Shown here: positions 4,212 to 61,132 of the stretch, one piece after another | How the letters are laid out: every line of letters starts with the position of its first letter | How positions within the stretch are numbered: position 1 is the stretch's first letter | Sequence record: PP793740.1 | DNA length: 64,000 nucleotides | Strand: one strand, 5' to 3' | Translations under genes and position numbers: made by a program | Notes under the pieces: generated by a model | The model's database searches: none | The model's input: only the letters and a program-made list of their open reading frames with translations | What the model was told of the DNA's origin: nothing

Positions 4212-4273
4212 TAACTTTATTTATTATAATAAATAAAATAATACTTTCATATACACTATATGTAGAAGATTCC

Positions 4274-40506: not shown

Positions 40507-40611
40507 AAAACCTCCTAGACGGCATACGGGAGTCCCGAAGGACCCCCTAAGCGCAACTAACCAATCGGCCAGTATTTTGCCTATAATATTAGTCTATTAA
40601 AAGTATTTTTA

Positions 40612-57708: not shown

Positions 57709-58110
57709 TCATGCTTTTGAAAGATCATATTTAATAGCTTCATCTTTCATAGGAGTTAATACAATAGTCACTTTTTCAAAACCATGTATATCCCTACCAT
57801 TATAAGAAATATCAATACTCTCCCAATCCTGGTTAACTACTTCAGCATGAAGAATATTTTTAATATTGATAGCATCTGTTTTATCAAACCATTTAAAAAC
57901 CTTTGGGTTAAATACAAGTTCGAAAGTAGTTTGATATGGATAGCTTTTCTGTTTAACAAGCCTACTAGATGCTAGTGATGTATTCTCAATATTTCGAATA
58001 ACATCAATCATTGCTTTACGGATAGTAAGTAATTTACTTTTCAGAACCAAATCAATAAATGCTGGATCAGTTGTCATTACTTCTTTTACAGATGGAAATG
58101 TGATTTCCAT
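57709..58110 (-). CDS. hypothetical protein, probable paralogue of 24238 and 58275
   Basis: FPSVKEV...FELV...QDWESI. Confidence 0.7.
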   Translation of the reverse strand: MEITFPSVKEVMTTDPAFIDLVLKSKLLTIRKAMIDVIRNIENTSLASSRLVKQKSYPYQTTFELVFNPKVFKWFDKTDAINIKNILHAEVVNQDWESIDISYNGRDIHGFEKVTIVLTPMKDEAIKYDLSKA

Positions 58111-58126
58111 AGCATCCTCTTATAGG

Positions 58127-58303
58127 TTAATTATTAAAAGATAAATCATAATCACTTTGTCTGCGATTCGGATTAACAGGATCAGGATATTTTCCAGTTT
58201 TGATAACTTCTTTTATAGCTCTAAAATCACGTTCTAGAAAATCTAGTTTTTTAACTAACTCTTTTTCTAATTCTTTATTGAGTAGTCTTCTTAATTTGCT
58301 CAT
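58127..58303 (-). CDS. 58-aa hypothetical protein (not in ORF track)
   Basis: hand translation MSKLRRLLNKELEKELVKKLDF...DLSFNN. Confidence 0.55.
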   Translation of the reverse strand: MSKLRRLLNKELEKELVKKLDFLERDFRAIKEVIKTGKYPDPVNPNRRQSDYDLSFNN

Positions 58304-58670
58304 CTACGTATACTCTCACAATGAACCAATTGATTAGGCCAAAACCTTTTGGTGTGATGGTAATGTCATCTTTATATCCATTTTTAGTGATTACATTACG
58401 TAATATTTTAATTGCTTCAGGTGGAATAAGATTAGCATTACCGGTAACACTATACTCGAAATAATAACCTACACCTGGTAAATAACCTGATGCAATCTGG
58501 TTAGTACCTGTGATATTACTAACGTGTTGGAAGTCACTAAAAGCATTCTTGTAGAATAACAAAATATTAGGAATTACTTCATCCCTAATAGTAGAACTAG
58601 TAATGGCATCCGCCGATGGAAAATAAGGTACTAATTCATCTGTTACATTGGTGCTATTAATATCGGACAT
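58275..58670 (-). CDS. hypothetical protein, probable paralogue of 24238 and 57709
   Basis: FPSADAI...FEYSV...NGYKDDI; first gene after promoter. Confidence 0.7.
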   Translation of the reverse strand: MSDINSTNVTDELVPYFPSADAITSSTIRDEVIPNILLFYKNAFSDFQHVSNITGTNQIASGYLPGVGYYFEYSVTGNANLIPPEAIKILRNVITKNGYKDDITITPKGFGLINWFIVRVYVDEQIKKTTQ

Positions 58671-58715
58671 AATCTTTTCCTCATTATAAAAGGATAAATA
58701 TCTTTATGGTAATCC

Positions 58716-58738
58716 TGTAATATAGATTTAAATTAATT
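58716..58738 (-). promoter_or_regulatory. phiKZ-type early promoter opening the leftward block
   Basis: transcribed strand AATTTAAATCTATATTACA. Confidence 0.75.
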
Positions 58739-58752
58739 TATAATGAATGGCA

Positions 58753-58779
58753 TAAAGGAGCCCACCAGGGGCTCCTTTA
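58753..58779. terminator. symmetric terminator hairpin
   Basis: TAAAGGAGCCC-ACCAG-GGGCTCCTTTA; no CDS ends near it. Confidence 0.75.
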
Positions 58780-58790
58780 ATGTAATAGGT

Positions 58791-58955
58791 CCGACCCCTA
58801 TCTAGAGGTCGGTGAGTAGCAAGGCACCGTAGTTGGGGTTCGTGTCGTTCCTGACGATACTTTAGTACCCCGGTTTATTTACGACTGGATCACCCCCTTA
58901 AAGTGCAGTGCGTTTTACGCAAACTGCCTTGCTCTATATCATTGCACTGTGCGTA
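58791..58955. ncRNA. candidate pseudoknotted structured RNA
   Basis: 80/160 G+C over 58791-58950, no ORF; stems AGCAAGGCA/TGCCTTGCT, AGTGCAGTG/CATTGCACT, AGTTGGGGT/ACCCCGGTT, GTGTCGT/ACGATAC, CCGACC/GGTCGG. Confidence 0.55.
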
Positions 58956-59020
58956 TTTTTATTCGTTAGCTAATCTTATGACTTAGAGTTATATTTACAT
59001 ACCCCTTAAGGAAAAATGCA

Positions 59021-61132
59021 ATGATAGACTCATTTAGGAAGCTAATGGGCTCGCTATCAATTACTGAAACTGATCAAGAAATTATCATCAGTGGTTTTGA
59101 TGGTGCTGCATTCATTAGAGATATTAACAAGTATTGGCGAACCACTAAATTAGCTACGCAGTTATTTAACACGGTTAGTCGTCGTAGTATTTCATTTTAT
59201 AAATTCTTTGCTCCTGAAATATATTACATGCTAGAAGCAGTAAAGAATTATAGAAGTAGATACATCTCTATTAAAACTGTTAATGCCATCCGTGAAGCAA
59301 TGCTTCAATATACCTGGTTAAAAAATACTCGTCCTGTAGATACCAACTCTGTACCAGGTAGACTCAATTTCAAGATGTTAGACAAATTGACATTTACACC
59401 AGATGAGTCTCAAAAAGCTTATTTTGAAAATTATAATTATCGAATTGACCAGTATGGTTTACGTGGTGATATTGTTGCAGGTAAACCTGGTACTGGTAAG
59501 ACATTCATGACGATGGCTATTGCTGAAATGGTTGAGTCGGATATCATTATAGTTGTTTGTGAAAAGAAGTCTATTGATCTAATATGGAAGCCATCTATTA
59601 TTGAGATGTATAAGGAAAGACAAAAAGTATGGTCGACCATTGATGATAAAGCCTACAACGGTCAAAGAATACTTATATCCCATTACCAGGCGCAAGATAA
59701 AATAATTGATCTATTAAGAAGCGGTATATTCAAAGGTAAGAACATTACGGTGATTCTGGATGAATCACACAATATGAACGATCCTAATTCTGCACAATCT
59801 CTTAAGTTCCAGCAAATATGTTTTATGTCTAACTCTAATAACAGATTATTAGCGTCAGGTACCCCTGTTAAAGCACTTGGTTCTGAATTAGTAAGTGCAT
59901 TAAGAGTATTAGACGATCTCTTCACCAATGAGGTTGAAGAACGTTTTAAGAAAGCATTTGGAAAAGAGACACAGAAAGGATTAGATATTGTCCAACATCG
60001 CTTTGGGTTAATTGCGTACGTCATTGAAAAGAAAGATACTGAGGTTTTACCACCGAGGATAAAAGCGTATCGTATCAAGATACCAAATGGATCACAGTAT
60101 ACTCTTAATGCCATTAAACGTGATTGTGAAGCTTTTATTAGAGAACGTGTAAAGTTCTATGCTGCGCGCCGACCAGAAGATGAGAAGTATTGGGCTAAAC
60201 TAATGGCGATACACGAGAACTCTCTTAAGACCCAGGCGCAGAAAGATGGTTTCGCTCGCTATAAGAATTTGATTAAAATAATTCAGAAGAATCAAGACCC
60301 GCGATACATTGGTGAAGAAATTAAAGAATCTAACCAATATGAAAAAATGTTTATAGAGCCAACTTTACCTCGTAATGAAATAGCTGCTTTTAGAGATATT
60401 AAATCAGTTATAAAATACGTTATGCTAAAGATACAAGGTGAATGTTTGGGAAGGGTTTTAGGTGCTAAACGCATTCAGTGCCATGTGGACATGGTACCGT
60501 ATATTGACTGGGTTGGTATCACTGAATCAACTATGAAGAAAACGATTGCATTTACATCGTTTGTTGAGGTTGTTGATACTGTTGATAAGTACACCAATAA
60601 ATTAGGTATGCATCCGGCGGTGGTGTATGGTAAAACCAATGACAATTTACCTCAAATAATCAGTAGATTTGAGAAAGACCCTAAATTAAATCCATTGGTA
60701 GCTACATATGCTTCCCTTTCAACAGCGGTCCGTATGACGATGGCTGATACTATGGTGACAATTAATTCACCGTTTAGGCATTACATTCTAGAACAAGCTA
60801 TTGCTCGAATTTACCGTAAAGGTCAGGATTCACAAACAGTCGTATATCAATGTACTCTCGATACAGAAGATGAACCGAATATCTCAACAAGGTCAGATGA
60901 CATTCTAAAATGGAGTCAGGCAATGGTTGAAGCTATTATGGGTATTAAATCTCCATTTGAGATCACAGAGTCATTAGAAAGTTATGTTGATAAAAATAAT
61001 AATTTTGATGAAAATAAAATCATTTATCAGATGCTAAAAGAATCATTTGAGAAGTATGATATCGCAATTGATTTTAATGACTTTGATACACGTATGTATA
61101 AACCATATCAGCCCGCATATATGCGGTTTTAA
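59021..61132 (+). CDS. SF2 (SNF2-like) helicase/ATPase
   Basis: motif I GKPGTGKT; motif II VILDESHN; motif III ASGTP; motif VI QAIARIYRKGQ. Confidence 0.88.
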   Translation: MIDSFRKLMGSLSITETDQEIIISGFDGAAFIRDINKYWRTTKLATQLFNTVSRRSISFYKFFAPEIYYMLEAVKNYRSRYISIKTVNAIREAMLQYTWLKNTRPVDTNSVPGRLNFKMLDKLTFTPDESQKAYFENYNYRIDQYGLRGDIVAGKPGTGKTFMTMAIAEMVESDIIIVVCEKKSIDLIWKPSIIEMYKERQKVWSTIDDKAYNGQRILISHYQAQDKIIDLLRSGIFKGKNITVILDESHNMNDPNSAQSLKFQQICFMSNSNNRLLASGTPVKALGSELVSALRVLDDLFTNEVEERFKKAFGKETQKGLDIVQHRFGLIAYVIEKKDTEVLPPRIKAYRIKIPNGSQYTLNAIKRDCEAFIRERVKFYAARRPEDEKYWAKLMAIHENSLKTQAQKDGFARYKNLIKIIQKNQDPRYIGEEIKESNQYEKMFIEPTLPRNEIAAFRDIKSVIKYVMLKIQGECLGRVLGAKRIQCHVDMVPYIDWVGITESTMKKTIAFTSFVEVVDTVDKYTNKLGMHPAVVYGKTNDNLPQIISRFEKDPKLNPLVATYASLSTAVRMTMADTMVTINSPFRHYILEQAIARIYRKGQDSQTVVYQCTLDTEDEPNISTRSDDILKWSQAMVEAIMGIKSPFEITESLESYVDKNNNFDENKIIYQMLKESFEKYDIAIDFNDFDTRMYKPYQPAYMRF

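Follow-up and report, generated by a model that had tools for sequence, protein, structure and literature searches.

The 64,000-nucleotide (nt) stretch of sequence record PP793740.1 analyzed here (the window) carries, at positions 58791-58955, an element that lies between the gene PHIKZ204 and the helicase gene PHIKZ203 of a phiKZ-like phage. Comparison of this element with its relatives indicates that it is very probably a structured RNA gene read from the minus strand. It represents a new RNA family with defined helices, strand and borders, a conclusion that is well supported even if the link to the ribosome proposed below should fail, and the gene is without annotation in the GenBank records examined. 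The one long block that is invariant in this family is complementary to the 3' end of 16S ribosomal RNA (rRNA). The explanation that we favor, and to which as a whole we give about an even chance, is that of a stand-alone structured non-coding RNA gene whose product would pair with the 16S 3' tail. Positions 58000-60000 of the window were 100% identical to vB_PaM_W10-2 and 99.7% identical to phiKZ, both jumbo phages of Pseudomonas aeruginosa; the minus strand of the phiKZ GenBank record corresponds to the plus strand of the window, and its plus strand to the minus strand of the window.

The element was present in 18 distinct lineages of phiKZ-like jumbo phages, as found by BLAST, pattern scans and scans of helicase loci, and its carriers include phiKZ, SL2, PA1C, PhiPA3, 201phi2-1, Noxifer and uncultivated jumbo-phage contigs (handles such as L173 are our own). 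The BLAST step yielded the element in SL2, the PA1C group and PhiPA3, and pattern scans yielded two more carriers, a 307-kilobase (kb) IMG/VR contig and a 290-kb metagenome contig. Scanning the loci of helicase homologues and the viral collection with the core motif brought the set to 18 lineages, 201phi2-1 and Noxifer among them; the helicase loci were collected by an alignment-based search, which replaced a single-protein search that had returned phiKZ only. Across the lineages the element was situated approximately 0.1-1.7 kb from the gp203 helicase gene, and its orientation relative to that gene was inverted in PhiPA3 and L173.

With phiKZ and SL2 as its only input sequences and the phiKZ fold as its structure, a covariance model recovered 16 distinct members, and in their alignment four helices (P1, P2, P3 and P3b) covaried strongly. 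Standard pairs occupied 91.5% of the paired cells, compared with 61.2% in shuffles and 27-47% with slid partners, and 28 of the 29 pairs were altered on both sides. Compensatory cells numbered 122 as against 33 in shuffles, and the covariation score was 0.69 as against 0.20, a value reached by none of 500 shuffles. RNAalifold on a plain MAFFT alignment of the 16 lineages returned only 10 pairs because the stems were misaligned, and the covariance-model alignment was substituted for it. In a test that did not depend on any alignment, duplexes of the P1 strands with their own partners had a mean energy of -16.3 kcal/mol, compared with -12.4 kcal/mol for cross-lineage partners.

On the minus strand, P1 pairs a 5' strand at 58925-58933 (AGCAAGGCA on the RNA) with 58818-58826, and 11 of its 11 pairs were changed on both sides across the relatives. 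P2 is a hairpin at 58905-58924, made up of a GCGT-TTT-ACGC hairpin with a GCAG/CTGC extension; six of seven pairs covaried, and the stem varies with the lineage (for example GCGC/GCGC, GUGC/GCAC, GGCUAC/GUAGCC and GACC/GGUC). At 58835-58871, P3 (GGGGU/ACCCC) encloses P3b (58842-58860), with covariation in 5/5 and 6/6 pairs, respectively. The junction AACUACGG (58827-58834) and the 3' strand of P1 together form a conserved block at 58818-58834, in which ACGG and CCUUG are invariant or nearly so. A further hairpin, P4 (CCGACC.../...GGTCGG, 58791-58812), was present in the folds of most lineages. In the fold that we propose, P1 would close a multi-branch junction bearing P2, the P3/P3b domain and an unpaired invariant 14-mer, and the P3/P3b domain would be capped by a GNRA loop in most relatives.

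These helices take up stems of the original prediction, which was made from the sequence alone, and every stem listed there was found where it had been placed. Across the 16 distinct relatives, compensatory changes preserve the stem 58818-26/58925-33 (P1), the nested GCGT/ACGC hairpin (P2) and both tiers of the linker hairpin (P3 and P3b), and most relatives have a hairpin at the position of CCGACC/GGTCGG. The H-type pseudoknot proposed there held up only in part. Both of its stems exist in phiKZ, where the second (58902-10/58940-48) had an energy of -15.4 kcal/mol compared with -5.8 ± 2.6 kcal/mol for shuffled arms, but in PA1C, L154, L169, L164 and most other lineages this second stem did no better than chance; L173 has an analogue. 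The H-type pseudoknot therefore marks particular lineages and is no family-wide feature. The complementarity concerned, between the region 5' of the 14-mer (58902-58910) and the promoter spacer (58940-58948), is likewise confined to certain lineages, with 9 base pairs (bp) in phiKZ and SL2, 10 bp in L173 and weaker pairing in 201phi2-1 and L202, and it has no explanation unless some transcripts start approximately 20 nt further upstream.

Six independent observations point to the minus strand as the one that is read, whereas the original prediction had modelled the plus strand. Directly 5' of P1, at 58934-58964 on the minus strand, lies a promoter-like box composed of an A-rich run, TAC(G), 13 nt and GATATAG, with a predicted start at 58933. 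In the published phiKZ middle promoter, an A-rich repeat is followed by a TACT motif whose center lies 22 nt upstream of the start. The box resembles the mapped phiKZ middle promoters P082, P098 and P116, the last of which corresponds to window position 40581 and was found here independently, by its pattern, before it was matched to the published table. It reads TACG in phiKZ and TACT in most relatives, at a constant distance from P1, and an A-rich run and TACT in a constant 22-nt string ending in TATAG stand directly 5' of P1 in PA1C, L154, L162, L164, L168, L178, 201phi2-1 and L202. By analogy with the mapped promoters, the 5' end would lie near 58933, and a length of approximately 147-185 nt is predicted for the RNA. 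A generic scan for sigma-70 promoters and terminators was uninformative, since transcription in phiKZ relies on the phage's own polymerases and the T tracts of its terminators are short. Boxes of the A-rich/TACT type, ending in TATGTAG, also precede the transfer RNA (tRNA) genes for tRNA-Asn (2155) and tRNA-Thr (4274), at 2069-2104 and 4242-4265 on the plus strand, which suggests that the RNA gene shares its promoter type with the phage tRNA genes.

At the other end of the element, a hairpin GGAGCCC/GGGCTCC followed by UUUAUGCC lies at 58747-58779 on the minus strand. Every lineage has a hairpin at this place followed by a tail of the type (Y)TTATG(Y)C(G)T or (Y)TTATGCCGT, on the minus strand only, and the published phiKZ terminator motif ends in YTTATKYYGT. 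Intrinsic terminators of the phiKZ form are thus seen as GGGCUCC UUUAUGCCAU in the window and as GGC UUUAUGUUGU in PA1C. On the plus strand, the tail of the hairpin showed no T-richness in PA1C and PhiPA3. The strong terminator without a coding sequence (CDS), as it had earlier been described, is a real hairpin, but it carries the phiKZ consensus on the minus strand and would end the RNA itself. A transcription end, T095, has been mapped at phiKZ 213001 (+) by ONT-cappable-seq (bioRxiv 10.1101/2023.10.13.562163). The 100-nt sequence given for T095 is the minus strand of 58747-58846, and the end falls approximately 4 nt past P4, near 58787; minus-strand transcripts do end at this locus.

The remaining observations on the strand come from the family as a whole. 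The P3b loop reads G-N-G-A on the minus strand in 15 of the 18 lineages by pattern scan and in L169 by its fold, with all four bases seen at N; phiKZ itself has CAGGA. None of the 18 lineages scanned had a G-N-G-A-capped hairpin on the plus strand. We read the G-N-G-A on P3b as the signature of a GNRA tetraloop. The family alignment on the minus strand contained 37 G.U cells as against 16 A.C cells, contrary to the earlier view that the wobble pairs favor the plus strand. The inversion seen in PhiPA3 and L173 takes in both the RNA and its terminator as a unit, and that of PhiPA3 takes in the promoter box as well.

The invariant 14-mer, 5'-AGGRGGUGAUCCAG-3' (R = G in the window), occupies minus-strand positions 58885-58898, where the consensus structure has an unpaired junction. 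Its sequence exactly complements 16S 1527-1540 (Escherichia coli numbering), a segment that contains the anti-Shine-Dalgarno sequence; R = G, as in 10 lineages, introduces a single G.U pair, and the other 8 lineages have A. The 14-mer is the only long invariant block in the 16-18 lineages, in which mean column identity was 49%. In phiKZ, the complementarity to 16S spans approximately 58880-58901, and with their flanks the RNA-16S duplexes were predicted to comprise 17-22 bp with energies of -33 to -42 kcal/mol. The cost of opening the 14-mer was 4.6-8.1 kcal/mol, and a good Shine-Dalgarno sequence would by comparison contribute approximately -9 kcal/mol. For 18 of 18 RNAs, the best match to the 8-kb Pseudomonas rrn locus was antisense to the 16S 3' terminus. 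In a scan of bacterial genomes, the 49-nt 16S tail used here had exact matches in many Pseudomonas species and in other Gammaproteobacteria, and the E. coli tail differed from it at two bases; P. aeruginosa has the same tail as the one used.

The bases that do vary in or beside the motif keep the pairing with 16S, namely A/G opposite U1537 and U1541 and C/U opposite G1526 and G1525, with L170 as the one exception. No start codon (AUG, GUG or UUG) was found at initiation distance after the motif, and the possibility of a small open reading frame (ORF) behind this Shine-Dalgarno-like sequence was rejected, as none is conserved. Titration of RsmA/CsrA did not fit the element either: the invariant motif reads AGGGGG in 10 of 18 lineages, with no GGA there, and the P3b loops are GNGA of varying N. 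The relation to the 16S 3' end, whether as complementarity or as similarity, had been missed in the original account. As a separate observation, L007, L008, L011 and related IMG/VR contigs, which belong to unrelated phages, have AAGGGGGTGATCCA approximately 10 nt before an ATG; judged by this position, an extended Shine-Dalgarno sequence of that form also serves as an ordinary ribosome-binding site.

Read on the plus strand, the element resembles 16S 1494-1542, with GTCGT, CAAGGNA and CCGTAG followed by CGGCTGGATCACCYCCTTA. The block beside P1 (in the 58818-58834 region) resembles 16S 1500-1514, or more widely 1494-1514; 14 of 15 bases match in L162, and GGTAGCC is kept in L176 and L173. Because this block evolves by compensatory change within P1, we regard it as the vestige of an rRNA gene fragment and not as a second targeting arm. 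The apex of helix 45 is replaced by an insert of 35-60 nt, no match to a small-subunit rRNA model was obtained for a sense copy of the 16S 3' minor domain, and the evidence points to transcription of the complementary strand.

We propose the following course of events for this RNA. Transcription would begin at the middle-type promoter near 58933 and end at the gene's own terminator (58747-58779), with the mapped 3' end near 58787. The RNA would display an extended Shine-Dalgarno sequence without a coding region behind it and would pair in trans with the host 16S 3' tail at 1527-1540, over 17-22 bp with flanks. On free or immature 30S subunits, the anti-Shine-Dalgarno site would then be occupied by the phage RNA, and the outcome might be an altered choice of messages for initiation, or a shielded 16S 3' end. 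The likeness of the plus strand to 16S 1494-1542 suggests that the gene was born from a captured piece of ribosomal DNA placed in antisense. That the 16S tail is the target of the RNA is a proposition that we put slightly below an even chance. The broadest form of the idea we advance tentatively and hold to be somewhat doubtful: that an antisense RNA dedicated to the host 16S 3' end is encoded by nucleus-forming jumbo phages and, independently of them, by PAK_P3-like phages, as a natural Shine-Dalgarno decoy acting in trans on the 30S or pre-30S subunit, which would reprogram or protect translation and would derive from a reversed rRNA gene fragment.

Several points weigh against this reading. 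The alignment in which covariation was scored had been fitted to the structure under test, and the numbers are somewhat inflated, although the margin is large. The asymmetry in folding energy is weak, the minus strand being better in 11 of 16 lineages by a mean of 3.9 kcal/mol and the plus strand being better in three; neither folding energies nor G.U counts in separate folds were decisive for the strand. The assignment of the promoter comes from sequence alone, and the published ONT-cappable-seq tables list no start site, transcription unit, non-coding RNA candidate or antisense RNA here, the entries within 212800-213099 being only P107, the promoter of the helicase gene, and T095. Moreover, T095 lies after P4, approximately 37 nt short of the point at which the terminator hairpin ends; processing of the ends is one possibility, and a start that fell under the calling thresholds is another. 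The pairing with 16S is deduced from complementarity and predicted duplexes. In the 30S subunit, the base of helix 45 takes up 1527-1529, and 1530-1534 touch the subunit, so that pairing over the full length may be prevented. Ribosomes are far more numerous than most small RNAs, and the phage's own messages also use Shine-Dalgarno sequences.

Among the alternatives, the one that survives best is a 5' leader acting in cis on the PHIKZ204 operon, as a conditional terminator or attenuator like those described for many phiKZ genes, in which the untranslated Shine-Dalgarno sequence might bind the 30S subunit and thereby stabilize the read-through message, in the manner of STAB-SD elements; we consider it unlikely. 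A gene on the same strand follows the RNA in phiKZ, SL2, L154 and L169, and transcripts of 5' untranslated regions (5'UTRs) that end by premature termination are common in phiKZ. By the measure used for 5'UTR-derived non-coding RNAs (less than 250 nt between start and end), the locus has a mapped end in T095 and is followed by PHIKZ204, with a start that is predicted. The sequence features of a STAB-SD element are likewise present, namely a complement of 14-22 nt, no start codon at initiation distance and no conserved ORF. Against such a leader, the unit in PA1C and HHBS36_1 is flanked on both sides by plus-strand genes, to which it runs antisense, and has no gene downstream; PA1C, in lacking a downstream gene, speaks against cis stabilization as the general role. 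In PhiPA3 the RNA comes after gene 232 and before the helicase promoter, and among the lineages the neighbor on the terminator side varies. Transcription in phiKZ takes place inside the phage nucleus, away from ribosomes, which disfavors attenuation coupled to ribosomes, and a simple attenuator would have no need of four covarying helices.

The layout of a promoter closely followed by a terminator-like hairpin does occur elsewhere in the window, at 40513-40605 (-), where the P116 start at 40581 is followed within approximately 65 nt by a hairpin and GTATGCCGT, before the Shine-Dalgarno sequence of PHIKZ234. This unit is a short leader with a terminator-like hairpin. Its identification with the published PHIKZ221 example proved wrong, since it belongs to PHIKZ234 with promoter P116.

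A functional RNA on the plus strand is improbable. It would be a mimic of the 16S 3' region, comprising the linker, helix 45 in remodelled form and the anti-Shine-Dalgarno tail; factors that bind or cut the 16S region could be drawn to it as a decoy, or it could be a small C-rich RNA by which the Shine-Dalgarno sequences of messages are masked. The plus strand does read like 16S 1494-1542, its helices can form on either strand, the three lineages mentioned above fold better on it, and phiKZ and L173 have additional plus-strand complementarity. This reading is countered by the lack of a conserved plus-strand promoter, the upstream DNA in PA1C being the end of a structural gene, and by the hairpin upstream of it, whose terminator tail is on the other strand. 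The published 3' end is also on the minus strand, the P3b loop would read U-C-N-C, and A.C mismatches would fall inside P1 in L169, L162 and L170. Lastly, the block resembling 16S 1500-1514 does not stay 16S-like but changes compensatorily in P1.

Action of the element as DNA, be it as an origin, a promoter for a primer RNA or a protein-binding site at the divergence point, is very improbable. In phiKZ the element sits where coding strand and GC skew switch, and the 14-mer contains GATC. The skew change at 58-59 kb coincides with the switch of coding strand, and gene orientation accounts for it; PA1C and PhiPA3 have the element without such a switch, and the origin or primer element suggested earlier finds no support. 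Compensatory changes in four helices, the GNRA loop and the terminator point to a folded RNA, and for an element acting as DNA the exact complementarity to the 16S tail would be a coincidence without explanation.

A plus-strand pseudoknotted switch for the helicase gene, or a ribozyme like that of hepatitis delta virus, as first modelled, is barely credible: although both pseudoknot stems are present in phiKZ and the second lies far above shuffled controls, that stem is missing in most relatives, the element is inverted in PhiPA3 and L173, no Rfam family was matched, and the helicase message starts at 58990, 3' of the element, which is therefore not its leader or switch. Of the three functional options in the original prediction, the stand-alone phage non-coding RNA came closest, the element having its own promoter-like box and terminator.

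The start of the helicase message is that of the late promoter P107 (58941-58990, plus strand), which begins transcription at the G of TATG and bounds the RNA from outside. The 50-nt upstream sequence published for P107 ends in CTAATCTTATG (bioRxiv 10.1101/2023.10.13.562163). The box CTAATCTTATGAC around the helicase start (58981-58993) is kept across genera, even where the RNA gene is inverted, and stands next to the helicase gene also in PhiPA3, L162, L164 and L169; Noxifer and L170 have CTAATTTTATAGTC in its place. A placement of CTAATCTTATGAC upstream of the helicase start was rejected, as the start is the G of its TATG. PHIKZ203 itself (plus strand, start 59021) encodes a helicase of the SNF2/ResIII type, called DarB-like in some records. 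In PA1C the helicase homologue is annotated as two overlapping CDSs (L002 3200-4243 and 4183-6194), which correspond to one gene in HHBS36_1; the split could be a frameshift or a sequencing error.

On the other side of the element lies PHIKZ204 (minus strand, start 58670), and no Pfam match was found for PHIKZ204, PHIKZ204.1 or PHIKZ205. The description of the intervening region as a G+C-rich island free of ORFs was borne out: no ORF of at least 30 amino acids was present in 58671-59020, and G+C was 0.51-0.54 at 58750-58899 compared with 0.23-0.36 in the flanks. ARAGORN detected no gene resembling a tRNA or transfer-messenger RNA at the element, the only tRNAs being three at 29, 2155 and 4274. 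The Infernal search that had been proposed as a check, run against Rfam over the whole window at the gathering threshold and over 58600-59100 at E up to 10, gave only weak chance matches, and no family was assigned to the element on either strand even at the looser setting.

The takeover of translation by giant phages such as phiKZ is only partly understood, and phage small RNAs have been catalogued with almost no functions assigned. The present family adds an RNA gene to the annotation of a model phage with a further use in therapy research, and a 14-nt perfect complement of the anti-Shine-Dalgarno region as its only invariant part provides a testable idea of RNA-rRNA targeting. An unrelated phage of P. 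aeruginosa, described below, expresses a small RNA with the 14-mer, which raises the prospect of a wider theme. If the proposal is true, a phage antisense RNA would reprogram or protect the host translation apparatus during infection.

Small RNA candidates that derive from 5'UTRs or intergenic regions have been reported for phiKZ and 201phi2-1 on the basis of ONT-cappable-seq and Grad-seq (PMC10914365, PMC11512511, PMC8545117), and in kind they stand nearest to the element. The element shares with them the form of a short structured transcript, with a promoter and a close phiKZ-type terminator, and conservation in jumbo phages. It differs in that the candidates named in the accessible parts of these sources (PHIKZ298 3'UTR, p40 5'UTR, PHIKZ221, PHIKZ302 and gp182/sRNA005) do not include this locus, and in that none of them is reported, in the same parts, to match rRNA.

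The closest parallel in another phage group is found in PAK_P3 (Nankokuvirus; NC_022970 85931-86017, +; L226 865-951), in which the 86-nt transcript TU125 holds the identical 14-mer AGGAGGUGAUCCAG. Both the start (P073, sigma-70) and the end (T040) of TU125 have been mapped, and the transcript has no annotated feature. The likeness is that of an identical 14-mer in a small untranslated phage transcript; the differences are that TU125 has another fold, in which the 14-mer can pair with a downstream AUCUCC, and that the promoter is of the sigma-70 type. A homologous 47-nt block occurs in the tRNA cluster of Pakpunavirus phages, just 3' of the annotated PAK_P4sRNA1 and between it and tRNA-Cys (loci L186 2582-2662 and, in PAK_P4, L225 ~950-1011). 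TU125 and its Pakpunavirus homologue also differ from the phiKZ element in their tRNA-cluster location and in having no detectable homology outside the motif. On the 37.7-kb IMG/VR contig L017 (70-160), a 10-bp stem GCAGCCTTGC/GCAAGGCTGC holds a stretch of 26 nt complementary to the 16S tail; a T-run comes after the stem, and the covariance-model score is weak (E = 0.04). By a rough estimate of the size of the collection, approximately 27 matches of the PAK_P3 and L017 type would be expected by chance in the scan that found them, so the argument from parallel cases rests on intergenic position, conservation and the mapped expression in PAK_P3.

STAB-SD or polypurine 5' stabilizers, as in the cryIIIA leader of Bacillus thuringiensis and in early RNA of phage SP82, are thought to bind the 30S subunit. 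Like the phage RNA, they carry a Shine-Dalgarno sequence that complements the 16S 3' end, is untranslated and lacks a following start codon. They are short cis elements at the 5' end of messages in Gram-positive systems, whereas the phage RNA has four helices, its own terminator and in some lineages no downstream gene. Synthetic oligonucleotides against the 16S 3' end, which block initiation (work of about 1978-1981), have the same target site and the same pairing as proposed here, the difference being that they are artificial. In mechanism, these oligonucleotides and the stabilizers stand nearest to the phage RNA. We know of no natural trans-acting RNA that targets rRNA in this way, and no account of a phage RNA with complementarity to the 16S 3' end came up in our literature searches. 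Among non-coding RNAs related to the 16S 3' end, OLE RNA reportedly copies part of that region to bind bS21 and is a mimic in the sense direction; the phage element differs from it in that the transcribed strand is the complement. 6S RNA, which imitates an open promoter and binds RNA polymerase, has no relation in sequence or structure to the phage RNA; the likeness is one of concept, a structured RNA occupying a core machine by imitating its nucleic-acid substrate.

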